Shown here in pieces: positions 23,933 to 53,857 of a DNA stretch of 64,000 nt. Numbering within the stretch: position 1 is the stretch's first letter; every line of letters begins with the position of its first letter. Position numbers and translations under genes: made by a program. The stretch is from Rebecca billardiae RCC1528 (Eukaryota > Protista > Haptophyta). Below the pieces are notes generated by a model. It was not told the origin of the DNA, did no database searches, and saw only the letters and a list, made by a program, of their open reading frames with translations. The DNA lies in the NCBI GenBank assembly GCA_965240325.2, contig OZ251235.1, positions 682,001-746,000 of the forward strand, in the 5' to 3' direction.

Positions 23933-23978
<46 letters not shown>

Positions 23979-25618
23979 GGAGTCTGTGGCCGCGTCGCGC
24001 AGCCGCGGCTCCGGCGGCGCGGCGCGGTGCCGCGCGTGCGGCCTGCGCTCGAGCACGCACGCCGCCGCGCCGGCGAGCGCCGCACACTCCGCCAGCGCGC
24101 AGCCGAGCTCGCGCGCGCCCTCGGCCGCCTCCGCCTCCGCGCCGTCAGGATGCAGCGGGTCTGCGTTGGCGCCGTCGCCGCGCGCGGGCAGCAGGAGGGA
24201 CAGCGGGGCGGGGAGGACCCACGGGGAGAGGACGCGCGATGCGCCGCCGCCGCTCGGCGCGACCAGCGCCACGGCCGAGCCCACCGATGCCAGCGTGCGG
24301 TGCGGGTGCGGCGGGTGCTGCTGCGCCGCCGCATGCGCGCCCGCGTCCGCGCCGCCGCCGTCGTCGTCCGCGGCCGACACGAGCTCTGCAGGGGCGGGCG
24401 CGGGCGGCGCGGACGGCACCGCCGTGACCGAGGCAACGATCGCGCCGCCACCCAGCCCAACCGCGCCGCTCGCGAGCGCGCGCGCGGGCGCCGCGCTGGC
24501 GCCGGCCGCCACGGCCGCCGCCGCGTCCGCCGCGGCCAACGCCGCGGCGGACGCGCCGCCGCCGCCGCGCGCGCGCGCCGCCGCCGCGCCGCCACCGCCC
24601 GCGGTCGGCGCGGCGGCGGCGGCGGCCGGCGGCGCGCCCGCGCCGCCCAGCCCCGCGCCGGGCGGCGGCGCGCCGTACGGGCGCAGTAGCCAGGCCTCCA
24701 CCGAGCTCGTGCGCCGCTGCGCGTGCAGCAGCCACGGGTAACCCGCCGGCGGCAGGCTGAGCGATCGGGCGGCCGCGTCGTCGCCCTCCGCGCCGCCGTC
24801 GCCGCCTGCGCGGGCGCCGCCGCCCGCCGCGCCGGCTCCGAGCCCGCGGCGCGCGGCGGCCGGGACGCCGGCGCCGAGCGCGAGCGCCCTCGCCAGCGCG
24901 CCGCCCTGCACGACCGCCTCGTACGCCGCCGCCTCGGCGCAGCCGTACGCGACCGCCGCCTCGGCGCGCGCCGCGGGCAGCGCGGCCGCGCGCGTCAGCC
25001 GTGCCGCATACGCGTGCGCGATGGCGACGTGTGCGCGCCGCCGCGCCTCAGGCGGCTGGTCGGTGCCGCCGCCCGGCGCGTCCGCGGGCACCGCGCCGCG
25101 CGCCGCCTCGCCCTCCGCCGCGGCCATCGCCATCGCCGCGCCCGCCTCCTCCGCGAGCCAGCCCAGCGCCAGGCGGCGCGCGGCCAGCATCGACCGAGTC
25201 GGGTCCACCCACACGCGCGGCAGCCAGCGCCTCAGCTGCGCGCGGCCGGCGCGCGCCGCGCCGTCGTCGGCGAGTGGCGGCGGCTGCTCTGCGCGCGCGA
25301 GCGCCGCGCGCCAGCCGCGCGCCAACGGCGCGCCGCGCACGCCGGGCGCGCGCGGCGCGGCGCGCGCGCCCGGCAGTGTGGCGGGGCGCGGCAGCGGCAG
25401 CACGCTGCCCGCCTCTGCCGCGGCGGCGTGGAGGCGGCGAGCGGCCGCCCTGCGCGCGGCGGCGCGTCGGCGCGCGTCGGCAGCGGCCAACGCGGCCGCC
25501 GCGCCCGAGCCTCGCCGCGTCACGCCGCCGCGCCGCACCGCGCCGCCACTGCCGCCTGCCGCGCTCGCGCCCGCGCCACCATGCCGCGCCGCGCCGCCCG
25601 CCGCGCCCGCCGCGCCCG

Positions 25619-25698
<80 letters not shown>

Positions 25699-26054
25699 GC
25701 GCCCGCCCACTCCGCCTCGTCCTCCGCCTCGGCGAGCGCGCCGCCGCGCTGCGGGGCGAGCACCAGCTCGACCGCCGCTCGGTTCGCCACGACCGCCACG
25801 CCGAGCACGCTCGCATGCGCGCACTGCACGCGCACGGCCGCGCCCAGCTCGGCTCGCCCCAGCGGAGTCGTGAGCAGCCGCGCGGCCGCGTCGTCCGAAT
25901 GGCAGCTGAGAGTGCCGGCAAGCTCCTCGGAGAGGGAGGCGACGGCGGGGCCGAGCGGCGCGGGAGAGGGCGGGCTCGAGTTGCTCGAGGAGGGTGCCGA
26001 TGGCTGCGTGCGCGCGCGCGCCGCCGCCGCCGCGCCCGCGCCGCGGACGCCGCC

Positions 26055-26096
<42 letters not shown>

Positions 26097-27599
26097 CGAG
26101 CCGGCCGCGCCGCCCGAGCCGGCCGCGCCGCCGCCACAAGCCGCCGCCGGCATCGACAGCCGCTGCGAGCGCGGGCTCACTTGCTGCGCGGCGCGCGCGC
26201 CCGCACCCGGCGCGAGCGCGGCGGGCGGCGTCGAGAGGCGCTGCGCTCGGCCACGCGCACCCACAGCCAACCCACCGCCACCGCCGCCGCCGCCGCTGTC
26301 GCCGTCGCCGCCGTCGCCGCCGCCGCCGCCGTCACCGCCGTCGCCGCCGCTGACGCGCCGCCATTGCTCCGCCGAGCGGCGCAGCGTGTCGCCCAGCCTC
26401 ACGCCGCCCTCGTACTCGGCGAGCCCCTGCAGCGCCACGCCGCCGCGCAGCTCGGCCAGCCCGCGGTACGCCGCGCGCACGACCTCCGTCTCCGCATGAG
26501 CCAGCAGCAGCCGCCACCAATCACGCGCCGCGCCCAGCGCGGCGCGGAGCGGCTCCGCGGCGACCGATCGCTCGAGCGGCGGAAGCGCGAGCTCGGCGGA
26601 GGCGGTGTGCCTCGAGGTGCGCGCGGCGACCTCGCGCGAGACCACGCGCGCGAAGCGCTCCACGTCGATCGGCCGCTGCGCGCCGAGGCTCGGCGGCGCG
26701 CCCGCCTCCGCCGCGCCGCGGCGCGCGGCGCGCAGTGCGGCCGCGGCGGCCGCGCCGAGCGCGCCGCCGCCCGCCGGCGCGGCGCGGCGCGGCGCTGGCG
26801 AGGCGGGCGGCGAGGGCGCGGGCGAGGGCGGGCGCGTGGGCAGCGGCGAGGGCAGCGGCGAGGGCAGCGCTCCGCCGCCGCCGCCGCCGCCCAGCTTCGC
26901 CCACGCGCGCTCAGCGTGCAGCAGCAGCGCGCAGCGCGCGGCCGCGCGGCCGCGCGGCGCGTGCGCGCAGCCCGCCGCCTCGGCCACTTCGAGGGCCACG
27001 GCTTCGAGCAGGGGCCAGAGGGTGAGGATGTGCGGCGCGGTGCTCAGCGCGCGCGGCGGCGGCGCGTGTGCCCCCTCGGCCGCCGGCACGCCCGGCCGCG
27101 CGCCCGCCGCGCCGCGACCGCCCTCGCCTTCGCCTTCGCCGCCGCGCCGCGCCGAGCGCGCCGCGCGCCTCTCGCCCGTTCCCACCGCCTCCGCCTCGCG
27201 CGCGGCGGCGACGGGCGCGGCGGCGCGCTCGGCGGCGCCGAGCTGCTCGGTGAGCGCGCGCAGCAGCCGCGCCTCGATCCGCATGGCCTCCGCCTGCTCC
27301 GCGTACCGCGCGGCGCACTGCGGCGCCGCGCCCGGCGCCGAGTCAGCCGCGCCCAGCGCGACGGGGGTCGCTGCGAGCGCGCAGCGCGCGCGCTCGCGCA
27401 GCGCGCGCGCCGCGGCCGGCTGCGCAGTTCGGTCGAGCACCTCGAGCTGTGCGCACACCAGCTGCGCGCGCGCCTCGGCCCACGCCGCCTCCGCCTCCCA
27501 CATCTGCGCGAGCCAGCCGCCCAGCTCGACTGACGACTCGAGGGCGGCGAAGCGCGCGCGCCGCGCGACTGTGGCTCGCTCGCGCGCGGCCGCGCTCGT

Positions 27600-27637
<38 letters not shown>

Positions 27638-29879
27638 TCGCGTCGAGGCTGGCGGCGGCGAGGGCGCGCGCCGCGCCGTCCACGTCAAAGTCCGCCCAGT
27701 CCGCCTCCGAGTCCACCGCCTCCTCGGCCTCGTCCTCCTCGGAGGACGAGCTGGACTCGTCGCCACCGCCGCCGAAGCCGCCGGTGGCGCCGGTGGCCGC
27801 GCCCTCCTCCTCCTCCTCCTCCGCCGCCTCGGCCGCAACAGCACCGGCGCCGCCGACGCGCCGCGCCGCGGCCGCGGCCGCGGCCGCCGCAGCCGCCGCC
27901 AGCGGCGTGGCCGGCGCCCAGCGCTTCCGCCGCCGGCCGTACCGCGCGCGCGCGTGCTTGGCGCGCGCGCGCGCCGCCGCCTCGACGCTCGCGCCCGCCG
28001 CCTCGAGCAGGAACGTGCCCACGCGCAGCAGCCGCACCTCCGCCGCGTCGCACGCGCGCAGCGCCGCGGTGTGCACAACGCGCGCGCCGCCCGCGTCGAG
28101 AACGGCCGGCGCGCGCGCGGACGGGGGCGCCGGCGCCGCGCCCGGCGCGGGCAGGGGCGCGGCGGCGGGGGCGGCCGGCGCGAGCGAGTGCTCCATCGCG
28201 CGCGCGGTGCGCAGCGCGTACGCCTCCGCCGGCAGCCACCCCGCAGGCCCCTCCGCGCCCACGCGCACGCACGCCTCCGGTCGGGCGGGCGCGGGCCGCG
28301 GCCGGCGCGCCGCCAGCGCCTCGAGCAGCGGTGCCTCGAGGCTGAGCCGCCGCTCTGCCCAGGCGCACACGTTGGCGGCGGCGAGGAGGCGCGCGCGCGA
28401 CTCGCGCATCGAGAGCTGCCGGGCCATGTGCACCGCGCGCACCAGCCGAGCCGTCGCCTCGCCCACGCCGCCGCCGCCCGGCGCGCCGCCGCGCGCCGCG
28501 ACCGCGTCTCGCGCGCCCAGCCAACGGCCGTGCGCCTCGGCGGCGCTCGCGAGGGGTGCGGCGGCGAGGCGCACGTCGTCCTCGCGCGAGATGGCGGCGC
28601 ACGCGAGCAGCCCCGCGTGCACGCCGCCCAGACCGCCGCCCGCGCCGAGCACTGTCCGCAGCAGCTGCGCCTGCTCCGCCGCCTCAGGCGCGCGCGGCGC
28701 GTGCGCACACGCGGGGCGGTGGTCGCTCGGAAGGGCGGCGGCTGCGGCTGCGCCCTCGGCCTCGGGGCCGGCGTCGTCCGCTGCGGCGGGCTGCGCGGGC
28801 GCGCCGCGCACGTCCACGTGCAGCTCGCGCGCCTGCGCGCGCCACAGCGCGGGGAACGCGTGCGCGACGAGCGCGGCCACAGCGGGCGCGGCGGCATCGG
28901 CTGCCGCGCTCGCGCCCGCCGCGCCGCCGCCCGACGGCTGCGGCTGAGTCGCGCTCGGTGGTGGTGCGGCGGCGGCGTCGACGCTCGGCGCGGCCGCGCC
29001 GCCGACGAGGACGCGCGGCACGCCCGGCGCGCCGCCCGGCCCGAGCGCGCCCTCCACCGCGCCCGCGGGCAGCACAGACGACAGCAAGTGTCGCAGCGCG
29101 CGCGCCAAGCCGACCAGCTCGGCGCCGAGGGCGCGCGCCGTGCGCGCGCGCAGCGGCAGACCGGCGGCGCAGGCGCGGAGCAGAGCAGGCGCGTCGGCGG
29201 CGCGCGCCCGCGCGCCCCCGCCGCCGCCCGCCGCCTCCTCCGCCCCCGCCTGCTCGCCCCCGCCGCCCCGCGCGACGCGGCGCGCCACCTCTGCCGTGAG
29301 CGGAGCGCGGTGCGTGTGCGCAGCCCACTGCAGCCGGATGCGGAGCAGCGCGAGCGGCAGCACGGCGCGCTGCTCGCGCAGCAGCCAGTCGGCGTAGTCG
29401 CGCAGCTCGGCCGGCTCGATCGCGCGCCGCGCGCCCGCCTCGGCCGGCGCCTCCTCCCACGGCCGCGCCGCGCGGCACACCCGACCGCCCACGCGGCCGC
29501 GCTCGTGCGCCGGCAGCCGAGAGTCGATCTCGGCCACGCGCGCCTCGAGCGCCGCGCCGAGCGGCGCGCGCGCGCCGGTGCGCGCGTGGAGCAGCACGCA
29601 CGCCGCGCGCTCGAGCTGCAGCGCGTCGTGCCGCTCGGCGTGCCACGCCGTCACGAGCTCGTGCACGTCCGGCTCGCGCGTGCACTCGGCGTCCGCGGCC
29701 AGCAGCGCGCTCGCGAGCCGGGGCGCGCGGCTCGGCTCGTCGGTGGCGGTCCAGCGAGCGGCGGGTGGGGGCAGCGTGCCGTCCACCGCCTCGCGGACGC
29801 TCTCGGGCGCGCCCGCGAGCATCGCCTCCGCCGCGTCCCGCGACCACGGCGGCGCGCCGGTCGGCACAGCGGCCGCCAT
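18373..29879 (-). CDS. Giant (~3,780 aa) Ala/Gly-rich protein, probably CCDC162/DUF4549-like; 2 exons (29879-20736, 20574-18373)
   Basis: ATG at 29879. The phase-0 intron 20575-20735 (GTGCGC...GCTGAC...CGCAG) joins the 3082-aa and 738-aa ORFs in frame. Blocks RQLSMRESRARLLAAANVCAWAERRLSLE, GARVVHTAALRACDAAEVRLLRVGTFLLE and MWEAEAAWAEARAQLVCAQLEVLDRT resemble CCDC162-family segments (recalled, not searched). Contains poly-D/E/G/A and (AD)n tracts. Confidence 0.7.
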
Positions 29880-30093
29880 GGTTCAGGGGGCCGACCCGGG
29901 TTTGCAACGGCCAGGGCAGCGCGCCTGCCCGCCTGCGCCTCACAAGTCACAAGCCGAGGGCTGAATCATCGATCATCATGATGAGGGGACAAAGCCGCTT
30001 CCGCGGTAGCGTGCAGGGTGCCGACATCGCCCTCGGAGGCTGATCCCGGCTGGCTCCCGCCTTCCGGTCTCTCGGCCTCATGCTTGGCCGTCG

Positions 30094-34744: not shown

Positions 34745-36860
34745 TGAGCTCAATCGTGCGTAACCACGGACCGCCGGGCATGGCCCACCCAACCGGTCGC
34801 AGCGCCGCGGGCGCCGCGGACAGCGGATCCGCGCGGGCGACGACGTCCGCGCGCGAGCTCGGCCTCGAGCAGCTGGGCGACAGCGCGAAGACCAACCAGA
34901 TGCTCACTGGCGTGACGAACGAGTTTGCCAAGTTCGCAAGCTCCAACTCCAGCGTGAGCACCGACCTCTTCACCAGAACGGGCGGCAGCCTGAACCTGAT
35001 GCCGGAGAGCACGTTCGTGACGCTTGCGCGGCAGCTGCCCTCGCTCGTCCCGATCACGAGCAAGATCAAGGAGAAGAACGAGCAAATCGCCACGGTGGAC
35101 GCGGCGACGCGCTCCAAGGAGAAGGTGCTCCTCGTCCGCGCGAAGGTCGCGCAGCGAGAGCTCGACGGCAAGAACGAGCCGATGACACCGGTACCACTCG
35201 CGGCCGCGCCGGCGTTCCCGCCCGCGGCAGCGCCCTCTGACGCGTCTGCGGACGGCGACGACGCGAGCAGCGGGCCGGCGAGCGGTCTCCCGAGCGTTGA
35301 GGCGACGGTGAAGTTCGATGGCATGTCCGTCACGGCGGAGGAGCTGCACGAGCTCGTCGAGGCCAAGCTCGCGGAGATCACGGCCGAGAGGGACATCACC
35401 ATCGGTAAGATTGCGATACTCGGAGAGGGCTTTGCTGGCGTCTCCGCGCTCGACAGCCCGAACCTGATCTACCAGAAGGTGTATGAGAACTCCGCGGCCG
35501 TGCTGCTGAAGCTGTTGAAGTCGACGCTGAACGCGGAAGCGCAGCAGTACGTGGACGCGTGCTCGCGGCGCAAGGGCATGGGCCCCTACCCGAAGGCTGC
35601 CGAGCAGCTGCAGGCGTGGTGGATTGAGCTGCGTGAGCTGCGCGACGAGGTGAGCGTCGACCACCTGATGGACATCATGGCCCCGTACCTGAACACGGGG
35701 GAGAGCGAGCACAAGACATTCTCGGACCTGCCGTCGTACCTGGCGTACTCGAAGGAGCGGCAGCTCGTATTCGAGCGCCTGCGGGCGCCGGCCGAGGCGC
35801 TCGAGCTGGCCCGCGTGCTGCAGCCGCTGCGCAGCATGAAGGGCGACCTCTCGCTCAAGTTGAAGCTCGACAAGTTCCTCAAGATGCCGTACGCGGAGGT
35901 GACGAACGCGACGCTCGTCATGATGAACTCCGACCTCGCGAGCCACCCGCCGCGCGGTGTGATCACCGTGGGCAACGTGAAGGAGCGCCCGCCCCCGCGC
36001 CAGCCGCCGAAGCAGCCGGCGCACGAGGTGTCCGGCGCGACGACGCCGCACGTCCCGCCAAAGCTGAAGTGCGACTTGTGTAAGGGGAACCACTACTACG
36101 GCAAGATGTGCTCGCAGTTCAAGCCGGACGGCCCGGTGCCGCCAGCGGTGGTCGCTGCGCGCGAGGAGCGCGCTGCTGCGCGCGCGCGTGCGAGGCAGGA
36201 GCAACCGGGCGCGGGTGCGCGCCGCGCCGCGGACCGCGGGGCCATCATCGTGCCCGCGGGTGTCCCCGGCCGGAGCATCGCACCGGGCGTCCGCGCGGTC
36301 CAGGCGATCGAGAACATTGACGAGGTGGAGCCTCACGACGAGGTGATCGGCGGGCGCGTCGCCGCCGCGGTCGTCGAGGACAAGGGGGGCGCCGAGCCGC
36401 CCAACCGAGCGAACGGGCGCATTGACTCCGCTGCCGACCGGTCAGTCGGCGGGATGTGGATGGTCGACGCCGGTCTTGTGGAGAACTTGACGGCGCAGAA
36501 CGGCGCGCTCATCGGCTTTGATGGCGGGGCCGCGGCCTCGTCGCTCAAGGGTGAGATCACCGCGCGCATGCTGAGCGTGGACGGCTCCGACTCGCAGCTG
36601 ATCAAGTGCGAGATCTGGATTGCCGAGGGCGTGGAGACCATCCTGCTGTCCGCGGACGCGCTCGCGAGCGTCGGCGCGACGACCACCATCTCCAAGTGGC
36701 GGCAGTCGTCGTGCGACTTCACGGACGTCGGAGGCGGCTACATCAAGATCGGCTCGGACGCGCGCGTCATCCTCGAGCTCCAGCCCGTCGAGGAGGCGGC
36801 CGCCGCCGCGGCGGGGCGCGTCGAGCCGGAGGCCGAACGCGCGCCCGCGCCCGCGCCTGT

Positions 36861-36898
<38 letters not shown>

Positions 36899-36924
36899 TC
36901 GGGCGCGCGCCGGGAAACGAGTAG
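34744..36924 (+). CDS. gag: Gag-protease ORF of the copia element
   Basis: Zinc knuckle CDLCKGNHYYGKMC (CX2CX3HX5C variant), copia-type protease motif RIDSAADRS, Pro-Ala hinge, TAG at 36922-36924. Confidence 0.85.
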
Positions 36925-36979
36925 GGCCCGAGCGCGCGGCGGCTGAGCGAGCTGCCGCCGGGCGTGCGCGCACGCCCGG
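36912..36979 (+). promoter_or_regulatory. Putative -1 programmed ribosomal frameshift signal (G GGA AAC plus 3' stem-loops)
   Basis: X XXY YYZ heptamer in the correct Gag phase (ccG GGA AAC gag tag). Stem GCCCG/CGGGC starts 7 nt downstream and encloses GCGGCGGCT-GAGCG-AGCTGCCGC. Perfect 22-nt palindrome at 36958-36979. Confidence 0.8.
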
Positions 36980-39900
36980 TGACAAGGAGCTCGGCCTGTG
37001 GGCCGCCCGCTTGGGCACGACGAACAAGACTTTGCTGACTCGCACTTGGCGCGCCACCGCTGGCATGCCGGAGGCGACGATGGCGCGCGCGCCGCTGGAC
37101 ACGCTGTCCGGCGCGCACATGAAACGACGGCCCTTTAACCGGCCCATGCCCCGCGCGACGCACCCGCGCGAGGTGACGCACATGGACGTGGTGTCCGTGT
37201 CGAAGATTGACTTGCCGATCGGCGAGGCCGGGATCCCGGTCGGCATGAAGTACGCGCTGGTGTGTGTAGATGACTACTCGCGCCGGATGAGCGTCTACTT
37301 CTGCAAGTTGAAGTCGCAGATACCTGACCTGATCGCGATGTATTTTCGCGAGATGGGAGCGCACGAGCTGTACGGCTCGCACATCGAGCTTGGACCTGGG
37401 TTCAAGCGATTCCACATCCACACCGACGGCGGCACCGAGCTGAACTCGGAGCGCGTGTCCGAGCTGCTGCTGCAGCTTGGCCTCGCCGCCAACGTGACGA
37501 GCGCGCCCGACACTCCCTCCTCGAATGGGGTGGCGGAGCACGCGATCCAGACTCTGGTGCGCGACACGATTGCGCGCCTTGCGATGACGGGCATGCCTGC
37601 CCAGCATTGGCACTATGCGATGCGCCACGCGTGCGCGAGCAGAAACCGCTTGGCGTCCAGGCGAATCATGCGCGACGGCGCGCTGATGTTCGTGACGCCC
37701 TACGAGCTCTTTTTTGGCAAGCCGCCGGACATGCGTCACGTGATCGTGTTCGGCGCCCCGTGCCGTGTGGTCCTGCAGGGACTCGAGAAGCAGCGGCGGG
37801 GCAAGCTGGGCATGCCGACGGTGCGTGGCCGCGTCCTCGGTCACGGCATCGACGGCTCCCAGATCGACAAGACGTTCCGGCTGCTGCTGGGGTACGTCGT
37901 GCTGCTCGATGACGGGCGCGTGATTCACTCCAAGCACGTGTACATTGATGAGCGGTCGCTGGTCGAGGGGGGGCACACTCCGTTCGCGACCAGCTATGAC
38001 GGTGCCGAGCCCGAGGGAGACGCCGCTGACGGCGAGCTCACCGACGAGGGCGACGGGCATTTTGAGATTGAGGACGGTGCAGCCGACGACGGCGGCGCTG
38101 CTGCTCATGACGACGGGGGCGCGGCGAGCGAAGCTGCGCGACCGAGCGCCGACGGCGATGACGCCGGAGGCGATGACGACGCACGAGCTGGTGAGTCCGC
38201 GGCGCCCGAGCTGCCGCGCGACTACGACCCGATGCGACGAGACCGAGCGAGGCGGAGCAGACCCGCCGCGCAGACGGTGCAGGCTGTGACCGAGGCAGCG
38301 TTCCAGGCCGCGGGCGAGGAACCTACCGAGGAGAACAGCTTCGAGGCATTCGCTGCAACGACAATCGCGCGGATGAATGGTGTGCCGATCACCATCCCCA
38401 CGACGTGGGACGAGGCGATGAAATCGCCCGAGGCCAAGCTCTGGATGCAGGCCTGCCATGACCACCTCGACGCGCACGGCGTGAGACACACGTTCTTCGA
38501 GGTGATTGTTCCGGACACCACGCGCACGATTCCTGTCAAGTGGGTGTTCGACGTGAAGACGCTTCCCGATGGCGAAGTGATCAAGTTCAAGGCGCGGCTG
38601 GTAACCCAGGGGTTCCGCCAGCGTGAGGGCATCGACTTCAATGAGGTGTTCGCCCCGACGATACGACCAGAACAGCTGCGGCTGATGCTCGCGGTCGCGC
38701 TCAAGGCCAAAGGCGTCTCGATGACGGACGCGGCGAGCGCCAAGATCGTGGAGACGCGACCCGCCGACGTGCGGCACGCATACCTGAACAGCGACCTGCC
38801 GGAGGGCGAGGAGGTGATGACACCGCTCCCGCCTGGCTACACCCCGAAGAGCTCGACGCCGCTCGGCTCGAAGGTGGTCGCGAAGTTTGTGAAGGCGCTC
38901 CCAGGCATGCGCCAGGCCGGGCGCGTGTGGTACCTACACTTGCGTAAGTGTTTGCTCGAACATGGGTTCGAGCCGTGCCCGAGCGCGCCGTGCATCTACT
39001 CGAAGGCAGTCGATGGCGGCTACGTGTTCGTCGGTCACTTTGTCGACGATCTGCTGATGATGAACATCTCGAAGGACAAGAACGCATTGGACGCGCTGAT
39101 GACGGCGTTGCTGACGCACTACGAGATGCAGGGCGCGGACTGCCTGAGCAAGTTCCTTGGCGCCGAATTTGAGACCACGGTGGACGGACTTTTTACCCAC
39201 CTGAACCAGTACATCGGTGATGTGTGCGAGCGCTTCCACCTGAGTGGAGAGCGCCACCCACCGACCCCCGAGTGCAGCGAGACGCGCGAGATCCCCCGCC
39301 CGCTGCAAGCCCTCCTGCTGCGCGCTGACCGCCAGCACTACCAGGAGATGACCGGTGCCCTCATGTACTGCATGACGACGTGTCGCCCCGACATCGCGCA
39401 CGCCGTGAACATGCTGGCACGCCGGATGTCCAATCCCCGGCTCTACGACTTGACCGCCGCGAAGCGCACGCTCCGATACTTGCTCGGCACGCGTCGGCGC
39501 GGCATCCTCTTCCGGCACGCGACGCACGCACAACACCCTGATTTGGTGGCGTACGCGGACTCGGACTGGGCGAACGATCGTGAAGATCGACGTTCTACGA
39601 CGGGATACCTTGTTATGTACAACGGGGTCCCGATCTCGTGGCACACCGGACTGCAGAGCGTGGTCGCGTTGTCTACGTGCGAGGCGGAGTACATCGCGCT
39701 GAGCGAGTGCTGCCGCGAGGTGATCTACCTGCGCGACCTGGTCACGTTTTTGAACGAGCCGGTCGTGGAGCCCACGACGGTGATCTACGAGGATAACCAG
39801 GGCACGATCGATTTGACGAACAACCCGGTGCACCACAAGCGCACCAAGCACATTGACGTGAAGTACCATTTCACGCGGCGCGCGCAAGCCGACGGCGCCG

Positions 39901-40034
39901 TGCTGATCCAGAAGGTGCCGACCGACGACAACCGGTCCGACATCATGACCAAGGCTACCGCGACGAGTACTTTTCTCAAGCACGTCGTGGCGATACTGCA
40001 TGCTGTTCCACCACCTCCGCCGCCTTCGGCATGA
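36918..40034 (+). CDS. pol: Integrase-reverse transcriptase-RNase H (pol), in the -1 frame relative to gag-PR
   Basis: LWAARLG pre-integrase motif; DDE residues in HMDVV, HTDGGTE and NGVAE. RT: KWVF, FKARLVTQGFRQREGIDFNEVFAP, FVDD. RNase H: YADSDWA, STCEAEY, YEDNQG, RTKHIDVKYHF, DIMTK. Confidence 0.93.
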   Translation, partial: RVGPERAAAERAAAGRARTPGDKELGLWAARLGTTNKTLLTRTWRATAGMPEATMARAPLDTLSGAHMKRRPFNRPMPRATHPREVTHMDVVSVSKIDLPIGEAGIPVGMKYALVCVDDYSRRMSVYFCKLKSQIPDLIAMYFREMGAHELYGSHIELGPGFKRFHIHTDGGTELNSERVSELLLQLGLAANVTSAPDTPSSNGVAEHAIQTLVRDTIARLAMTGMPAQHWHYAMRHACASRNRLASRRIMRDGALMFVTPYELFFGKPPDMRHVIVFGAPCRVVLQGLEKQRRGKLGMPTVRGRVLGHGIDGSQIDKTFRLLLGYVVLLDDGRVIHSKHVYIDERSLVEGGHTPFATSYDGAEPEGDAADGELTDEGDGHFEIEDGAADDGGAAAHDDGGAASEAARPSADGDDAGGDDDARAGESAAPELPRDYDPMRRDRARRSRPAAQTVQAVTEAAFQAAGEEPTEENSFEAFAATTIARMNGVPITIPTTWDEAMKSPEAKLWMQACHDHLDAHGVRHTFFEVIVPDTTRTIPVKWVFDVKTLPDGEVIKFKARLVTQGFRQREGIDFNEVFAPTIRPEQLRLMLAVALKAKGVSMTDAASAKIVETRPADVRHAYLNSDLPEGEEVMTPLPPGYTPKSSTPLGSKVVAKFVKALPGMRQAGRVWYLHLRKCLLEHGFEPCPSAPCIYSKAVDGGYVFVGHFVDDLLMMNISKDKNALDALMTALLTHYEMQGADCLSKFLGAEFETTVDGLFTHLNQYIGDVCERFHLSGERHPPTPECSETREIPRPLQALLLRADRQHYQEMTGALMYCMTTCRPDIAHAVNMLARRMSNPRLYDLTAAKRTLRYLLGTRRRGILFRHATHAQHPDLVAYADSDWANDREDRRSTTGYLVMYNGVPISWHTGLQSVVALSTCEAEYIALSECCREVIYLRDLVTFLNEPVVEPTTVIYEDNQGTIDLTNNPVHHKRTKHIDVKYHFTRRAQADGAVLIQKVPTDDNRSDIMTKATATSTFLKHVVAILHAVPPPPPPSA

Positions 40035-40448: not shown

Positions 40449-40728
40449 AATATTTAATGGGGACCGCCGCGGCCGCCGCTGGCCCGGCGGCGACACCTCG
40501 GCACCTCGCTGTCTGACCGCGCTGACGCTAATAAAATTATTTATAATAATTTATTATTACGACTATTATAATGATATTATACTATTATTCGGATAGTCTT
40601 GGTTACTGCCCAAAGGCCAAATAATGCTGGCGGTGCAACGCTGCGCTCACGAACCGCGCGCGTGCGCGCGGGCGCCATCACCCCGATGGATGCACGATAG
40701 GGTGCAGCATGGGGTGGCAGCTCCGGCC

Positions 40729-40817
40729 GCGCACGCGAGAGTGGTCTCGGGCGCCGCCCGCAGGAGAAGGCTCCCGCTTTGGAGGCGACACCGTCATGGA
40801 TGCGGTGGTGGGCGCGC
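40729..40817 (-). promoter_or_regulatory. Eukaryotic type-2 SECIS element in the 3' UTR of the arsenite methyltransferase gene
   Basis: Minus strand reads ATGA-C-GGTGTCGCCT-CC-AAA-GCGGGAG-CCTT-CTCCTGC-GGGCGGCGCC-C-GA-G. This gives the AUGA/GA core (40797-40794; 40748-40747), a fully pairing 10-bp helix II, an unpaired AAA 13 nt after AUGA and an apical mini-stem. Helix I (GCGCGC/GCGTGC) is weaker. Confidence 0.88.
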
Positions 40818-41044
40818 CAGCAGCGTCGAGCGCGATGATGGCGGTGCCAAGCAAGTCCGAGCGCACGCCTGAAGCCAGCCAGCGCTCAGCGCGCGATCGA
40901 GCGCGGAGCGGCGGCGTGCGAAGGTTGGAGGGGTAGGGGGGGCGAGAGACGACGCCGGTGCGCCGTGCTCGGTCCCCGGCGTGCGCCGCGGCGAGCGCGT
41001 GCCGGGTGCGGGAGCACGGATCTCCAGAGGAGCGCACCGGCCGC

Positions 41045-42257
41045 TTACTGTCAGCACGCCTGCCCCGCCGCGCACGGCTGCTCCTGGGGCGCACGCGGCG
41101 GCGGCGGCGCGGCCTCCGCCTTGGGCTCAGCCGCCGCACTGCCGCTGGGCGGGCTGCCCTCGAGCGCGTCGGCCATCGGCTCGTCCTCGTCCGCAGCGCT
41201 CGGCGCGGCGCGGGGCGGCGGGCGCCGGCCGAAGACGCTCGGCGCCGGCATGCCGAGCACGAACGGCACGGTCGCGCCCACGAGCGCGTCGATCAGGCTG
41301 GCGAGCGGTGGCGCCGCGCGCGCGACTGCCGAGTAGGCCGCCAGCGGCGCGGGGAGAGGCTTGCGCGCCGTCACGTACGCCGAGACGACAAACTTCTCCG
41401 CGCCGGAGCCGGGCATCCAGTCCTTGATGAACTCGGCCGACTCCGTTTTCTCCTGCACGGAGGCACACGCCACGCGCGCGCGTGAGCGCGTGAGCGCACG
41501 CGAGAGCGCGCGCGCGCGCGCGCTTGCGGGACGGCCGGGCGGCGCGCGCGGCGCGCACCTCGATGGCCACCTCCGTGAAGCCGACGTTGCGCATGGCTGC
41601 CGCGAGCTCGTCAGGCTCCGGCGCGCCCGCGACTCAGCAAGCGAGCGCCTCCGCCGTCTTCAGCGCCTCCGGCATCGGCCCCGAGCCGCGCGCCTGCACA
41701 ATGTCGGACACGGCGATCCGTCCGCCCGGCCGGAGCGCGCGGAACGCCTCCGCCATCACCTGCTGCTTGTCGGGCGAGAGGTTGATCACGCAGTTGGAGA
41801 TGAGCACGTCGACCGAGCCGTCCGCGACGGGCAGGTGCTCGATCTCGCCGAGCCGGAACGTCACGTTCGTCGCGCCCATCTGCTGCGCGTTTGCGCGCGC
41901 GCGCGAGATCATGTCTGGCGTCATGTCCACGCCGATCACCGCGCCCGACGGGCCGACCGCGCGGCCGGCGAGGAGCGAGTCGAAGCCGGCGCCCGAGCCG
42001 AGGTCGACGACGCGCTCGCCAGGCTGCAGCGCCGCAATCTTGATCGGGTTGCCGCAGCCCAGCCCCAGATTCGAGCCGTCGCCCAGCTTGCCGAGCGCGA
42101 GCTGCTCCGACTCGTAGCCCAGCTTGGCGGACGCAAAGTCGAAGTCGCGCTGGTCGCCGCAGCAGCCGCCGCCGCCGCCGAGGAGCGGCTTGCCCTTCGC
42201 CGTCTCCGCGTACGCCTCGCGCACGCCCTGACGGACGGAGTCTGCGGTGGCCTCCAT
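41045..42257 (-). CDS. arsM: Selenocysteine-containing arsenite S-adenosylmethionine methyltransferase (ArsM/AS3MT family); exons 42257-41559 and 41452-41051 (or -41045 if the second UGA is also Sec)
   Basis: GCCG, LGLGCGNP, VDLGSGAGFD, GVDMTPDM, GEIEHLP, ISNCVINLSPDK, LRPGGRIAVSD, then AC-TGA(41636-41634)-VAGA...GFTEVAIE. Phase-0 intron 41453-41558. Exon 2 EKTESAEFIKDWMPGSGAEKFVVSAYVTARKP is the typical ArsM C-terminus. SECIS downstream. Confidence 0.93.
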
Positions 42258-48967: not shown

Positions 48968-49329
48968 GCTGCTCGCGCCCGGCAGCGCCGTGCAGGCGCA
49001 CGCCCAGAAGGAACCACTGCTCACTGGGGGCGAAGCCCGGTGAGCAGCCCCGGATCTTCGTAATCGCGCCTTGATATTCGGCGGTAACCGACTGACGAGC
49101 GCAAAATCCGGACCAGCACCCGGCGGCACCCAGCGCTGGCTCCCAGCAAGGAGACTTTAATAAAAGTGGGTTATTTGTAAGGACCCCCGGGAGCTAGCTC
49201 CCAGACCCAACGAGAGAATCTCTTGCGCTAAAAAAATGCCGCGTGATGGCGCGTGCCGCGTGGGCGGCTTATTCTTCGATCGAATACGCTCACGATTCAT
49301 CCCAGTAGCAACTTGAATGGGCAGTGGGT

Positions 49330-49492: not shown

Positions 49493-52400
49493 ATGCGGCG
49501 TCGGAGCGCAGGCGCAGCGCGCGCGGCGCGGCTGGCCGCCCTCGCCGCCCTCGCGCTCGCCGCCCACCCGGCGCGCGCGCTCAACGTCGGCGTCATCGGC
49601 AAGCAGCAGGACTCGAGCGCGCGAGAGTCGTTCATGGCCATGCTCGCCGCGAACCACTTCAACGCGCGCGCGGCGCACGTGGTGCCGCAGTTCGGCGAGC
49701 TGGGCGGCTGTGCGCTGCGCATCAACGCCACCCTCGCCGACTACCTCGGCCTGTGCGGCCCCGCCGTCGACCGCTACATCGACGGCCGCGAGCGGTTCGG
49801 CTGGGAGGCGCTGTGGGGGCCCGGCCGGTCGGCGTGCGCGGAGGCGCTCGCGATCCTCGGGCGCACGTTCGGCACGGTGCACGTGAGCGCGACGTCGACG
49901 TCGCCGACGCTCGACGACGAGATCCTCTACCCCTTCTTCGCCCGCGTCGTCCCCTCCGACGACGCGATCGCGGGCGCGATGGTCGCGTACGCGGCGCACC
50001 ACGGCTGGAGCCGCGTCGGCGTGCTGTACGAGCAGGACGGCTCGTTCGCCGACGCGCTCGCCGCGGCGATCCGCTCGGAGGGGCTGGCGGCGGGCATCGC
50101 CGTCGAGAGCGCCTTCTACCCCGACGCCGCCGGCATCGCGCCCGCCGTCGCGTCGCTCACCGCCGGCAGCGACGGGCGCGGTCCGTACCGCGTCGTGTTT
50201 GCCATCTGCACGTCAGCCGACCTGCCGACGGTGGTGGAGGCGGCGGTGGCGGAGGGGATGCTCGGCGTGCCCGGGCGGCACTGGGTCTTCTCGGACGCCG
50301 TGCGCTTCGACAACTTCCTCGCCGAGCCCTGGGCCGCGCACCTCGACGGCTCGGCGCAGATCCTCGCCGCGGGCGCCGCGCCGGACGACCCGACGTGGGT
50401 GCGGCTGCAGGCGGAGTGGCGCAACCTCACGTCCGACGCGTTCGGCGGGCAGCTGCCGCCGGGGATGGGGCTGGCGGAGGCGGGGCTGCCGCCGCTGCCG
50501 TCCGACGCGGCGGCGGCCACCAACGCCACGTGGACCTTCGCCACGCCGCTCTCGGGCCGCGAGGGCCTCGCGTACGACGCGATGGCGGCGATCGGGCTCG
50601 GCGGCTGCGCGCTCGAGGCGGCGATCGCCGCGGGCGAGGTGGGCGCGGAGGCGCTCGAGAGCGCGACGGGCCGCGCGCACGAGCTGCACGCGCGGGTGAA
50701 GGCGCTCGCGTTCACCGGCGTGAGCGGCTCCGTCCGCTTCGACGCCGTCGGCACGCGCACGCCCACCTCCGCGCGCTCGGCCGTGCAGAATATTGTCGCC
50801 GCGCCGCTGGGCTCCGGCCTCGTGCTGCGGGCGCTGCCGTTCGTCGGCGTGTACGCCGACGACGCGTGGGTGTTCGAGCGGGGCGTGCGCTTCTTCGGCG
50901 GCTCGAGCACGCCGCCGCTCGACGGCACCGCCCTGACCAGCTGCCCCGCCGGCCAGTACTACGCCGGCGAGGGCGTGTGCAACAACTGCCCGAGCGGCAC
51001 CGTCTCGCAGTCGGGATCGACGTCGTGCGAGCAGTGCGAGCGCGGCACGGCGGCCTCGCGCAGCCGCAAGGCGTGCGTGCCGTGCGAGAGCGACGCGTAC
51101 CAGGACGAGGCGGGCTCGGACGAGTGCGAGCGCTGCCCGCTCGACTCGGCCCACCTCGTCCCCTCCGGCACGCGCGCGCGCCCCTTCAACTCGGCGCGCG
51201 GCGCGACCAACGCCTCGGCGTGCGCGTGCGTTCCGGGAACCTTCCTGCCGTCGGCCTTCGACTCGCTCGCGGAGGCGGGCGCGGCGTGCGCGGCGTGCCC
51301 GACGGGCGGCGTGTGCGACGGGACGGGCGAGGACGTGCGCATCCGCCCGCAGCCGCTGCCCGGCTGGTACGGCCGACCCTCCGCGCCCGAGGTCTTTGTC
51401 GCGTGCGCCGTGCAGGCCGCGTGCCCCGGCGGCGGCCTCGGCGTGTGCTCAGCCGCATACACGGGCGACGTGTGCTCCGACTGCGCGGCGGGGTGGTACG
51501 CGGCGGCGAGCCACGAGTGCGTGCCGTGCTCGGGGAGCCACGTCGCCGTCGCCGTCCTCGCGCTCGTCATCCTCCTCCTCGCCGCCGCCGCCGTGCACCT
51601 CGCCGCCAACCTGCGCGAGAAGGACGAGCTGCGCGCGGGCGCAAAGCTCTCGTCCACAGTCGCGGCCGCGGCCGACTTTCAGTCGCTGCTGCTCTTCCTG
51701 CAGGTGGTGAGCATGCTGGACGGCGCGAGCGTGCGCTGGCCCGAGTCGGTCTCGGCGCTGATGCGCGGGCTCTCGTGGGTCAACCTCGACGTCTCCGTCT
51801 TCTCCGCCGAGTGCACGTGGGGCCTGGGCTTTGTGCAGCGCTGGCGGCTGCAGGCGGCCGCGCCCTTCTACGTTCTGGCGGTGTACCTCGGGTACACGCT
51901 GCTCGTACCGCTGCCGCGCGCGCTGCTGGGGCCCGAGCCGAGCGACGCGCGCAGCCGCGTGCACGCGTGCAAGCTCGCCGCGTACCGCTCGGCCAACGCC
52001 TGCGTCCTCGCGCTGCACATCGTGTACATCTTCACCGCGCGCGCCGGGCTCGCCGCGTTCACCTGCCGGCAGCAGCCCGACGGCACGCGCACGATGGCGC
52101 ACTACCCGGCGATGGTGTGCGGCTCGGAGGAGTGGGCGCGCGAGGTGATGCCGGTCGGGGTCGCGTCGGTGGTGCTCGTGGTGGTCTACCCGCTCGCCCT
52201 CGCCGCCGTCTTCGCGCGCGGCTACGACCAGAAGTCCGAGGCGATCCGAATCTCGACGGCGATCGCGCGCGTGCCGTACAAGCGGCGCTTCTACTTTTGG
52301 GAGGCGGTCGAGCTGCTGCGCAAGCTGGCGGTGGCGGCGGCGCTGGCGGCGGTGGGGCTGCCCGGCGTCGCGCAGCTCGCGTTCGTCTCGGCCGCCACCG

Positions 52401-53857
52401 CCATCGCCCTCGCGCTCACCCTGCGCGCGCGCCCCTTCCGCCACGCCCTCGTGAACGACCTGAGCGCTGCGATCCACTCGTGTCTGCTGCTCGTGCTGCT
52501 GTGTGGGATGGTGTTCAGCGTCACGCACGGCGCGGCGAGCGCCGCGCGGCAGGGCGGCGGCGCGGTGCTCGCGGAGGGCGGCATGGGCGCGAGCGCGCAG
52601 ACGCTCGAGCGGCTCACCATCGCGCTCACCGTCATCATCTTCGCCGCGGTCAGCGTCGCGTGCGGCCTCTCCCTAGCCCACCTCCTCTTCGCCGCCAGCC
52701 AGTACTACTTTGAGCGGCGCGTGCGCGTGCAGCACTCGCCCGAGCCGAGGCGCGGGCGCGTGATGCCCGGCGGGTCGTCGTTCCGCGTGTCGTCGTTCCG
52801 CGAGATGAGCACCTACCTCGGCGGCAGCGGCAGCCTGCGCAACGCGCTCGCGCGCATCTCCACGGCCTCGTCGGTCGCGCCGCAGCCGCAGGGGCACGCG
52901 CCGCAGCCGCAGGGGCTGCAGCCGCAGGACGCGTCCGAGGACGGGCGCAGCGGCCGCAGCACGGAGCCCACCGCCTCCGAGCGGCGCAGCACGGACCTGA
53001 CGAGCAACGCGGGCTCGGTCCCGTACCGCTCGCCCGCGCCGGGCATGAGGCGCCGCTCGAGCGCAGACGGCGGGCGGCGCGGCAGCATCGGCGGCGCCGA
53101 CCTCGACGCGCAGCCGCGCTGGCTGACTGCCCTCGCAAACCTGCGCTCGCGCTCGCGCGGCTTCACGCCCGAGCTGGTCGAGGCGCTGCAGCTGCTGCTC
53201 ACCAAGCTGCCCGCCGAGCGCGTGGTGGACGAGGTGGTGCAGCAGCTCGACGACGAGGACGAGCTGCGCCAGCTCACAGACTCGATGATGCTCCTCTTTG
53301 TCCTGCTCACGCAGACGCGCATGTTCCGCCGCTCGTCCGACGGCAGCCGGCTCGCGCAGCTGATGGGCCAGTCGGGGCTGACGGCGCACGACGTGCAGTA
53401 CGCGATGACGCGGTTCCGCCCGAGCCAGCGGCGCAACATCATCGGCACGCTCAGCGAGCACGTCGTGACGAGCAGCAGAAACCTGCCCATCCCCGGCCGC
53501 GACGAGAGCTGCGCGCGGCCGAGCAACGCGTCCGTCAGCCACGACTTCAGGGCGCCGCGGCAGCCGCCGGGCGCGGTGGGCGCGGACGGCGCGACGCACA
53601 TCGAGCCGGCCGGCCCCGCATCCCCCGAGGCGCGCGCCGACACGCGCGCCGGCGTGTCGCCGTCGTCCGTGGCGGCGGCGGTGGAGATGCTCGCGCCCGT
53701 CACGGCCGCGTCAGGCGCCGTGGCGTTGAACGCGACCGACGGCAGCCGACTCGTGAGGCTGTCGGAGGACGAGGTGCTGGACACGGCCGCCACTGACGCC
53801 GCCCGGGAGCGCCAGGAGGAGCAGGGCCAGCTCGGCGGGCCCGGCCCGCCTTTGTGA
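49493..53857 (+). CDS. Multipass receptor-like protein: signal peptide, Venus-flytrap (ANF/GABA-B-type) domain, Cys-rich repeats, multi-TM domain
   Basis: Signal AARLAALAALALAAHPARA. VFT motifs GPGRSAC, SATSTSPTLDDEILYPFFARVVPSD, YDAMAA, FTGVSGSVRFD. CPAGQY/CPSGT/CERGT/YQDEAG Cys-rich repeats. 7-8 hydrophobic helices with YFWEAVELLRKL and RPF motifs. Single exon. Confidence 0.85.
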   Translation: MRRRSAGAARAARLAALAALALAAHPARALNVGVIGKQQDSSARESFMAMLAANHFNARAAHVVPQFGELGGCALRINATLADYLGLCGPAVDRYIDGRERFGWEALWGPGRSACAEALAILGRTFGTVHVSATSTSPTLDDEILYPFFARVVPSDDAIAGAMVAYAAHHGWSRVGVLYEQDGSFADALAAAIRSEGLAAGIAVESAFYPDAAGIAPAVASLTAGSDGRGPYRVVFAICTSADLPTVVEAAVAEGMLGVPGRHWVFSDAVRFDNFLAEPWAAHLDGSAQILAAGAAPDDPTWVRLQAEWRNLTSDAFGGQLPPGMGLAEAGLPPLPSDAAAATNATWTFATPLSGREGLAYDAMAAIGLGGCALEAAIAAGEVGAEALESATGRAHELHARVKALAFTGVSGSVRFDAVGTRTPTSARSAVQNIVAAPLGSGLVLRALPFVGVYADDAWVFERGVRFFGGSSTPPLDGTALTSCPAGQYYAGEGVCNNCPSGTVSQSGSTSCEQCERGTAASRSRKACVPCESDAYQDEAGSDECERCPLDSAHLVPSGTRARPFNSARGATNASACACVPGTFLPSAFDSLAEAGAACAACPTGGVCDGTGEDVRIRPQPLPGWYGRPSAPEVFVACAVQAACPGGGLGVCSAAYTGDVCSDCAAGWYAAASHECVPCSGSHVAVAVLALVILLLAAAAVHLAANLREKDELRAGAKLSSTVAAAADFQSLLLFLQVVSMLDGASVRWPESVSALMRGLSWVNLDVSVFSAECTWGLGFVQRWRLQAAAPFYVLAVYLGYTLLVPLPRALLGPEPSDARSRVHACKLAAYRSANACVLALHIVYIFTARAGLAAFTCRQQPDGTRTMAHYPAMVCGSEEWAREVMPVGVASVVLVVVYPLALAAVFARGYDQKSEAIRISTAIARVPYKRRFYFWEAVELLRKLAVAAALAAVGLPGVAQLAFVSAATAIALALTLRARPFRHALVNDLSAAIHSCLLLVLLCGMVFSVTHGAASAARQGGGAVLAEGGMGASAQTLERLTIALTVIIFAAVSVACGLSLAHLLFAASQYYFERRVRVQHSPEPRRGRVMPGGSSFRVSSFREMSTYLGGSGSLRNALARISTASSVAPQPQGHAPQPQGLQPQDASEDGRSGRSTEPTASERRSTDLTSNAGSVPYRSPAPGMRRRSSADGGRRGSIGGADLDAQPRWLTALANLRSRSRGFTPELVEALQLLLTKLPAERVVDEVVQQLDDEDELRQLTDSMMLLFVLLTQTRMFRRSSDGSRLAQLMGQSGLTAHDVQYAMTRFRPSQRRNIIGTLSEHVVTSSRNLPIPGRDESCARPSNASVSHDFRAPRQPPGAVGADGATHIEPAGPASPEARADTRAGVSPSSVAAAVEMLAPVTAASGAVALNATDGSRLVRLSEDEVLDTAATDAARERQEEQGQLGGPGPPL

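Follow-up and report, generated by a model that had tools for sequence, protein, structure and literature searches.

A two-exon ArsM/AS3MT-family methyltransferase gene with two candidate selenocysteine codons in the haptophyte Rebecca billardiae

Gene layout

The window, a 64-kb stretch of DNA, carries on its minus strand what we take, with a probability of about 0.87, to be a two-exon nuclear gene for a 368-residue S-adenosylmethionine (SAM)-dependent methyltransferase of the ArsM/AS3MT family that is a selenoprotein. Two in-frame UGA codons are predicted to be read as selenocysteine (Sec, U), one at the predicted arsenic-binding site and the other, probably, adjoining the C-terminus. An open reading frame (42257..41637) closes with ...EALAC and is followed by a TGA at 41636-41634, codon 208, beyond which the frame continues as VAGAPEPDELAAAMRNVGFTEVAIE (VAGAPEPDEL...) as far as 41559. 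Exon 1 (41559..42257, minus strand), delimited from the list of open reading frames, the sequence and profile matches, extends from the ATG at 42257-42255 to codon 233 (E), and encodes the SAM-binding Rossmann domain (VVDLGSGAG) together with Cys32/33, Cys68 and Cys156. A phase-0 GT..AG intron of 106 nt follows (41453..41558, minus strand; GT at 41558-41557, AG at 41454-41453), and if it is left unspliced the reading frame is lost. Exon 2 (41045..41452, minus strand) begins EKTESAEFIKDWMPGSGAEKFVVSAYVTARKP, holds the ArsM C-terminal motif ESAEFIKDWMPGSGAEKFVVSAYVTARKP and then an extension of about 100 residues, partly kept in two relatives (L001 and L005). It ends with a TGA at 41053-41051 (codon 367, the probable second Sec), CAG (Q368) and a TAA stop at 41047-41045.

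The splicing and the 3′ end of the transcript are modelled on relatives: the predicted spliced junction, VAIE-EKTES, matches their transcripts without gaps (e.g. VQIE-EKAES in L001). In three near-identical, independent contigs from three runs (L002-L004), the two TGAs and the intron are retained, as is the SECIS element described below. TGA is used normally in this GC-rich window, where it is the commonest terminator of long open reading frames, so that nothing suggests a reassigned genetic code. The 64-kb window holds no tRNA gene and none of the genes of the Sec-insertion machinery (tRNA-Sec, SBP2, eEFSec, PSTK, SepSecS, SPS2).

The original prediction had the frame continuing past the UGA and passing through a phase-0 intron into the ArsM C-terminus. 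Both parts of this model were recovered, the second also in a BLASTP alignment (E = 6e-11) in which the pieces after the UGA are colinear with residues 203-226 and then 229-259 of a bacterial ArsM, starting right after Cys202.

The candidate SECIS element

Folding and a strict pattern locate a SECIS-like element of form 2 at 40747..40797 on the minus strand, 248 nt 3′ of the TAA. Its parts are AUGA (40797-40794), a 10-bp helix II (40792-40783 with 40759-40750), a CCAAA bulge with AAA at 40780-40778, a mini-stem of 7 bp with a 4-nt loop (40777-40760), and GA (40748-40747). The predicted fold of the 56-nt core has an energy of -28.6 kcal/mol (z = -2.7), and the strict pattern matches only here in the 64 kb, both strands included, with 0.13 matches expected from dinucleotide shuffles. 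A type-2 SECIS had been claimed at this place in the 3′ UTR, and it is present there, with a weak helix I (3-4 bp and a long 3′ internal loop) and a sub-threshold score with the Rfam model SECIS_1 (RF00031), which gives 18.8 bits over 40806-40732, the gathering score being 35. Longer RNAfold windows favour competing structures over the core.

In scans of single loci RF00031 also misses the GUGA-type SECIS of a relative, which marks the model as weak on algal elements, and it gives 30 bits (E = 0.0012) to a relative whose SECIS 5′ arm is nearly identical (L059). When five related loci were scanned jointly with Rfam no SECIS was matched, an effect of the larger search space, which raised the E-values and made the filters stricter. 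Aligned with MAFFT, the SECIS candidates had their 3′ GA and helix II out of register; relatives were compared by scanning for a pattern built on anchors, the antisense strand and shuffles serving as controls. The strict pattern occurs on the sense strand of 16 of 39 related 3′ UTRs, in none on the antisense strand and in no shuffle. A scanner that accepted no helix I shorter than 4 bp missed the candidate at 40797-40747 and picked 49293-49199 (minus strand). The latter site is situated upstream of a plus-strand gene, no minus-strand open reading frame precedes it, and it was judged a chance match.

Family assignment and the first UGA

Residues 1-207 alone score 268 bits with the NCBIfam arsenite methyltransferase model NF008823 (PRK11873), whose cutoff is 263, the match covering profile positions 3-199 of 272; Pfam Methyltransf_31 matches at 1.5e-35. 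Invariance with bacterial ArsM extends to VVDLGSGAGFD and ISNCVINLSPDK, segments that take in the SAM-binding motif hhDLGxGxG and the SNCVINL loop. In a read-through alignment with X placed at each TGA, U208 takes the place of the Cys that never varies in the GC[VI][AS]GA motif of bacterial and archaeal ArsM, and a profile of these proteins equates that Cys with C224 of CmArsM (PDB 4fr0/4kw7). Placement of the UGA at the conserved catalytic Cys, next to another Cys (Cys207), thus agrees with what had been proposed. Cys156, within SNCVINL, occupies the position of CmArsM C174, and the metalloid-binding pair C174/C224 corresponds to Cys156/U208. Cys68 (GLGCGNP) and Cys32/33 (GCCG), candidate counterparts of CmArsM C72 and C44, are likewise invariant with bacterial ArsM; because the N-terminal stretch aligns only loosely with the chain of 4fr0, the counterpart of C44 is approximate. 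The short stretch that follows the UGA, used as a query against PDB sequences, returned no match.

The same column was followed through 80 related marine loci from metagenomes and metatranscriptomes. It holds TGA in 66 and Cys in 12, in line with the expectation that orthologues would show Cys or UGA there, and in the 66 loci with TGA the Cys before it and the reading frame after it are conserved as well. Spliced MMETSP transcripts with read-through in a single frame are among the 66; AC-TGA-VAGAP stands in one frame in L001, L005, L008 and L009, of which L001 and L009 are MMETSP transcripts, and the nearest transcript (77% identity) is also from MMETSP. Every one of the ten nearest database proteins ends ...[AS]C. 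That gene callers would truncate the protein was anticipated and is borne out by a public 207-aa product (P0001), which is this protein cut exactly at UGA208; the many public clusters of 'arsenite methyltransferase' entries of about 205 aa may reflect the same truncation. Where the callers cut at residue 207, the gene model proposed here joins two exons, reads two codons as Sec and stops at TAA.

The family itself had been described before. Lobanov et al. 2007 (PMC2375036) presented a 'SAM dependent methyltransferase' (MT) selenoprotein in Ostreococcus tauri, O. lucimarinus and Thalassiosira pseudonana, with the motif ACUV[ST]GA in their supplementary file 2; Zhang and Gladyshev 2008 (PMC2398784) named it arsenite S-adenosylmethyltransferase (arsM/PRK11873), in prokaryotes and eukaryotes; it is entered as the MT family in 'The algal selenoproteomes' (PMC7539508); and bacterial Sec-ArsM with a UxxG motif is among the experimentally verified selenoproteins (PMC13188914). 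The suggestion that the family might not be entirely new was therefore right and understated: since the family, the Sec position and the CUQ tail were all published in 2007-2008, the gene is a new member of a known family, present in marine algae and bacteria, and no new kind of system. It would add one further lineage to a selenoprotein family through which the use of selenium is tied to the way marine plankton handle arsenic.

The algal MT selenoprotein shares with this gene its fold, the ...EAL-ACU-V[AST]GA... Sec site, the C-terminal extension, a SECIS in the 3′ UTR and the C-terminal block ESxxFIKxWMPGSGAE, the window reading TAEALACUVAGAPEPD...ESAEFIKDWMPGSGAEKF; the C-terminal CUQ is identical in O. 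tauri. It differs in that the present host is very GC-rich, the sequence of the extension has diverged, and the SECIS is of the AUGA type whereas those of Ostreococcus are mostly GUGA. The solved enzymes (CmArsM 4fr0/4fs8/4kw7, Chlamydomonas 5evj, and 8xt7) have the same SAM-binding domain and conserved metalloid-binding cysteines; compared with these Cys-ArsM/AS3MT proteins, Sec here replaces Cys at the C224 position, Cys207 is an extra neighbour, and a CU tail is added. In length the protein is much shorter than the algal/animal AS3MT type and nearer the bacterial type of about 270 aa. Bacterial Sec-ArsM (NF008823) has its Sec at the same UxxG position, and the double selenoprotein NF047649 (methyltransferase/UXPK-star) resembles this gene in having another Sec within a few residues of the C-terminus, but in bacterial systems the SECIS lies within the coding region directly after the UGA. 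The double-selenoprotein models NF047649, NF041536 and NF041537 (PMC13188914) give this gene scores far below their cutoffs (145 versus 460, 134 versus 575 and 141 versus 510 bits, respectively), and the NF047649 tail is UXPK-stop while that of this gene is U-Q-stop (U-X-stop).

The second UGA, proposed mechanism and alternatives

With codon 367 read as Sec the protein ends ...AC-U-Q-TAA. Among 53 distinct relatives, 42 have a C-terminal TGA followed after 0-2 codons by TAA or TAG, never by TGA, and in most of the 42 a Cys adjoins the TGA (CU in 26, UC in several others). Across environmental sequences, conservation of the two Sec positions is widespread, and the dyad is present in about four-fifths of the distinct marine eukaryotic Sec-ArsM sequences sampled. 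The O. tauri protein is annotated with the tail KCUQ (PMC2375036, supplementary file 2); in the literature we found the C-terminal CU/UC dyad only in that one 2007 supplementary alignment.

We propose that the eukaryotic machinery for Sec insertion is brought in by the one SECIS and would decode both UGAs as Sec, translation ending at the TAA. By homology to the solved ArsM enzymes, Cys156 and Sec208 would bind As(III), Cys68 and Cys32/33 would take part, and the bound As(III) would be methylated from SAM. As ligand and as redox partner, a selenolate could stand in for the thiolate. The most likely role of the C-terminal Cys-Sec pair, which is borne on a flexible extension, would be that of an additional site for redox chemistry or metalloid handling. 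Parallels are the Cys-rich tails found in bacterial ArsM and, by analogy, the C-terminal GCUG redox centre of thioredoxin reductase. In the latter enzyme, too, adjacent Cys and Sec are second- and third-last in a flexible C-terminal tail and are decoded through a 3′ UTR SECIS; its fold and activity are unrelated, and electron shuttling by the present tail is drawn from that analogy only.

Were UGA208 a true stop, the product would be a 207-residue truncated methyltransferase or a decaying pseudogene, and the downstream similarity a relic. Public gene calls do yield exactly that product (P0001), but the protein frame after the UGA, including the ArsM C-terminal motif, is kept across many species with diverged DNA, the exon junction is preserved and the SECIS lies downstream of UGA208; a pseudogene would also leave the UGA column of 66 loci unexplained, and we regard this reading as highly improbable. 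It is unlikely, to a lesser degree, that UGA208 is the sole Sec and that translation in fact terminates at the TGA of codon 367, giving a protein that ends ...GQAC. TGA does top the long-ORF terminators of the window, reading past codon 367 adds only two codons, and O. lucimarinus is drawn with the end ...PKC in the 2007 alignment (PMC2375036). Such a terminator is, however, hard to square with the closely following TAA or TAG, never TGA, and the mostly adjacent Cys in the 42 of 53 relatives, or with the KCUQ annotation in O. tauri (PMC2375036), and a SECIS on the same mRNA would also recode TGA367. We therefore prefer the reading with two Sec residues.

The substrate is a separate matter. From homology we infer arsenite, and selenium-dependent arsenic methylation by this protein would follow from the same sequence comparisons. 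An ArsM-fold Sec methyltransferase acting instead on a different soft metalloid, for example Se, Te or Sb, or on a small molecule that reacts with thiols or selenols, is an outside possibility to which we give some small weight. Activity data for eukaryotic members are absent from the literature examined, and the authors of 2007 called the protein merely a 'SAM dependent methyltransferase' (PMC2375036); the clade-specific extension of about 100 aa with its CU tail, and the thioredoxin-like N-domains or N-terminal membrane anchors of some relatives, would also fit another substrate. Against this, the curated NF008823 cutoff is exceeded, the metalloid-binding Cys positions invariant in bacterial ArsM are all retained, and O. 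tauri, which has an orthologue, methylates and volatilises arsenic according to work cited in PMC5398495. Arsenite thus remains our preferred substrate.

More tentatively, and with the odds against it, the C-terminal Cys-Sec or Sec-Cys dyad might be a conserved second active centre, making the enzyme a self-regenerating metalloid methyltransferase with two seleniums. Acting like the tail of thioredoxin reductase, the dyad would bring the selenenylsulfide or disulfide of the active site back to its reduced form following every methyl transfer, or pass As(III) to Cys156/Sec208, and arsenic detoxification in marine phytoplankton would then depend directly on selenium supply.

One relative (L009) has a thioredoxin-like N-domain, which was considered as a substitute for the CU tail; the idea was dropped, five other relatives (L012, L023, L042, L055 and L061) carrying both. 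Thioredoxin-like N-domains or N-terminal membrane anchors are found in some of the relatives.

Gene structure and the position of the first UGA

The gene lies on the minus strand and begins with an ORF of 207 codons (ATG at 42257) that ends ...TAEALAC, directly before an in-frame TGA, codon 208 (41636-41634). The frame is kept past this TGA through VAGAPEPDELAAAMRNVGFTEVAIE to 41559, where a 106-nt intron follows (GT 41558-41557 ... AG 41454-41453); exon 2 opens at 41452 with EKTESAEFIKDWMPGSGAEKFVVSAYVTARKP and runs for about 100 more residues to ...PCAAGQAC-TGA-CAG-TAA (TGA 41053-41051, TAA 41047-41045). The spliced read-through is 368 codons long, of which the 208th and the 367th are TGA, and the reading frame is lost if 41558-41453 is left unspliced. 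In L001, a transcript of a relative, VQIE-EKAES spans the place equivalent to the exon junction. A long plus-strand ORF (36555-40034) comes within a few hundred bases of the 3′ end of the gene.

Residues 1-207 by themselves reach 268 bits with the NCBIfam arsenite methyltransferase model NF008823 (cutoff 263) and match Pfam Methyltransf_31 (1.5e-35). The 25-residue piece after the UGA aligns to residues 203-226 of a bacterial ArsM protein (P0031), immediately past its Cys202, and exon 2 aligns colinearly to residues 229-259 (E = 6e-11), in agreement with the original prediction that the frame runs past the TGA and through an intron into the ArsM C-terminus. The full read-through, with each TGA written as X, was aligned by MAFFT with bacterial and archaeal ArsM, and X208 shares a column with the invariant Cys in the GC[VI][AS]GA motif. 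In a search of PDB sequences with a profile built from Cys-type bacterial and archaeal ArsM proteins, this Cys lines up with C224 of the Cyanidioschyzon enzyme (4fr0/4kw7) and with its counterpart Cys in the Chlamydomonas enzyme (5evj). The remaining conserved ArsM positions are kept, in GCCG (Cys32/33), GLGCGNP (Cys68) and SNCVINL (Cys156). The predicted placement of UGA208 at the conserved Cys is therefore correct.

Conservation of the two UGA codons

Each of the ten nearest database proteins (57-99% identity) terminates in ...[AS]C at exactly the UGA208 point, and full-length homologues at greater distance run on through GC[VI][AS]GA. We took the DNA of four relatives (MMETSP transcripts L001 and L009, Logan contigs L005 and L008), and all four read ...AC-TGA-VAGAP... 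and then the ArsM C-terminus, in one frame throughout. A profile of the post-UGA region, searched against metagenomes and metatranscriptomes, yielded 80 loci; the column is occupied by TGA (immediately 5′ of [VI][AGS]GA and nearly always preceded by Cys) in 66 of them and by Cys in 12.

The first TGA is also present in three independent contigs, 99.7% identical to the window (ERR14847148, ERR14847150 and ERR14847152), and is therefore not a sequencing error; one of these near-identical contigs, L002, covers the entire locus, in which the intron, the SECIS and the two TGAs are retained without change and only codons 170 and 174 differ. Nor does anything point to a reassigned code, since TGA is the commonest terminator of the long ORFs elsewhere in the window.

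The C-terminal TGA was surveyed in 53 distinct relatives of the Sec type whose 3′ end is complete. It is followed by one codon and TAA or TAG in 31, directly by TAA or TAG in 10, and by two codons and a stop in one; only seven end in a plain TAA or TAG. Cys stands just before this TGA in 26 relatives and just after it in several others (G-U-C, S-U-C, K-U-C). In every listed case among the Sec-type loci L010-L089, the terminator after the C-terminal UGA is TAA or TAG, never TGA; very GC-rich hosts, in which TGA is the dominant stop, are no exception. This pattern, far from the expectation for random terminators, argues for a C-terminal Cys/Sec dyad conserved across Sec-type relatives, which in the window protein would be Cys366-Sec367-Gln368.

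The SECIS-like element

A matching SECIS had been predicted in the 3′ UTR, and a SECIS-like element lies at 40797-40747 (minus strand), 248 nt 3′ of the TAA. Its 5′ side has AUGA and one unpaired C, followed by a 10-bp helix II (GGUGUCGCCU with GGGCGGCGCC); above this are a CCAAA bulge, a 7-bp mini-stem (GCGGGAG / CUCCUGC) and a closing CCUU, and then C-GA. The 56-nt core adopts exactly that fold (-28.6 kcal/mol, z = -2.7), while in 91-nt and 141-nt contexts RNAfold favours competing pairings; helix I has just 3-4 bp and a long internal loop on its 3′ side.

Rfam SECIS_1 gives 18.8 bits at 40806-40732 (gathering score 35, E = 3.1). The same model scores the element of the relative L059, with a 5′ arm almost identical to that in the window, at 30 bits (E = 0.0012) and has no match to the GUGA-type element of L028. 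Because SECIS_1 is thus a poor judge of SECIS elements in Sec-ArsM relatives, we used a strict pattern scan instead ([AG]UGA; helix II of 9-13 positions with at least 9 pairs, starting one base past the core; AA 10-14 nt from the core; GA on the 3′ side). Its sole match on both strands of the 64-kb window is 40797-40747, against a mean of 0.13 matches in 60 dinucleotide-preserving block shuffles. In a deduplicated set of 39 3′ UTRs from Sec-type relatives, 16 match on the sense strand, 51-363 nt past the stop, and none on the antisense strand or in shuffles. Pairs read by hand rather than by a model show substitutions that keep pairing: U-A for G-U and G-C for A-U in the mini-stem of L005, and U-A for C-G in helix II of L037.

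A looser SECIS-like pattern at 49199-49293 on the minus strand (AUGA ... GA, 95-nt span, 6-bp helix I) probably arose by chance, as it lies upstream of a plus-strand gene (49493-53857) and has no preceding minus-strand ORF. In L080, whose gene has two UGAs, two SECIS-like elements lie 296 and 549 nt past the stop. The 3′ UTR of L001 (1440-1950) holds near-identical repeated segments, one with GUGA and one with AUGA, with Ns between, and yields no clean SECIS call. A ~60-nt island (40540-40600), lying some 150 nt 3′ of the window's SECIS, is almost wholly A/T (aataatagtataatatcattataatagtcgtaataataaattattataaataattttatt) in surrounding DNA of 69% G+C; it could be a polyadenylation/termination region or an intergenic spacer.

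Family membership and proposed function

The locus thus combines two UGAs and a SECIS-like element with the signature of the ArsM fold, in which Sec occupies the C224 position; the original observation is confirmed and its interpretation supported. Its suggestion that Sec methyltransferases might already be known in algae also holds. Lobanov et al. 2007 (PMC2375036) listed O. tauri, O. lucimarinus and T. pseudonana as having a 'methyltransferase' selenoprotein; their supplementary alignment has ...NEAL-ACUVSGAHEQD, ...ACUVTGAHEED and ...ACUVSGAPEMAS lined up with GC[LV]AGA of a deltaproteobacterium and M. acetivorans, and an O. tauri C-terminus of ...VKCUQ. Zhang and Gladyshev 2008 (PMC2398784) named the family arsenite S-adenosylmethyltransferase (PRK11873, arsM), with selenoprotein forms in prokaryotes and eukaryotes alike, and the MT family is present in 'The algal selenoproteomes' (PMC7539508). 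Bacterial ArsM (NF008823, motif UxxG) is placed among experimentally verified selenoproteins in a 2026 review (PMC13188914), which cites Fomenko et al. 2007 for it and also has double-Sec relatives, one of them a methyltransferase/UXPK-star protein. Against the bacterial double-selenoprotein models the window gene scores far under cutoff; it fits the algal MT family in every respect tested. It adds one member to a family of selenoproteins on record since 2007-2008, and the main value here is a corrected gene model and a survey showing the wide conservation of the two Sec positions.

By analogy with established eukaryotic Sec insertion, the SECIS would recruit SBP2 and eEFSec with Sec-tRNA, both UGAs would be decoded as Sec, and TAA would end translation. 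Homology to ArsM suggests that As(III) would be held between Cys156 and Sec208, aided by Cys68 and Cys32/33, and would receive a methyl group from SAM. More speculatively, the C-terminal CU dyad may be a redox or metalloid hand-over centre; the CCGPxCC-type tails that end many bacterial ArsM in the MAFFT alignment suggest an analogous role. Work cited in PMC5398495 has O. tauri methylating and volatilising arsenic; the literature surveyed contained no enzyme-level assay of a eukaryotic Sec-ArsM.

In L009, L012, L023, L042, L055, L061 and L080 the N-terminus carries a thioredoxin-like domain whose active site is degenerate (e.g. FADWDPKC, FYAEWS), and L038, L039 and L050 begin with a hydrophobic membrane-anchor-like helix; unlike these subgroups, the window protein has neither. 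In the ESM Atlas, many bacterial 'arsenite methyltransferase family protein' clusters, spanning Bacillota, Planctomycetota, Nitrospirota, Acidobacteriota and others, have representatives of ~200-207 aa, the size that truncation at a Sec codon in the UGA208 position would produce, which suggests that such clusters are widely mis-annotated. Elsewhere in the window, very long stretches of ~85% G+C (1-14000, where AT skew is strong, and 20000-30000) yield huge spurious ORFs on both strands and may be satellite or repeat arrays.
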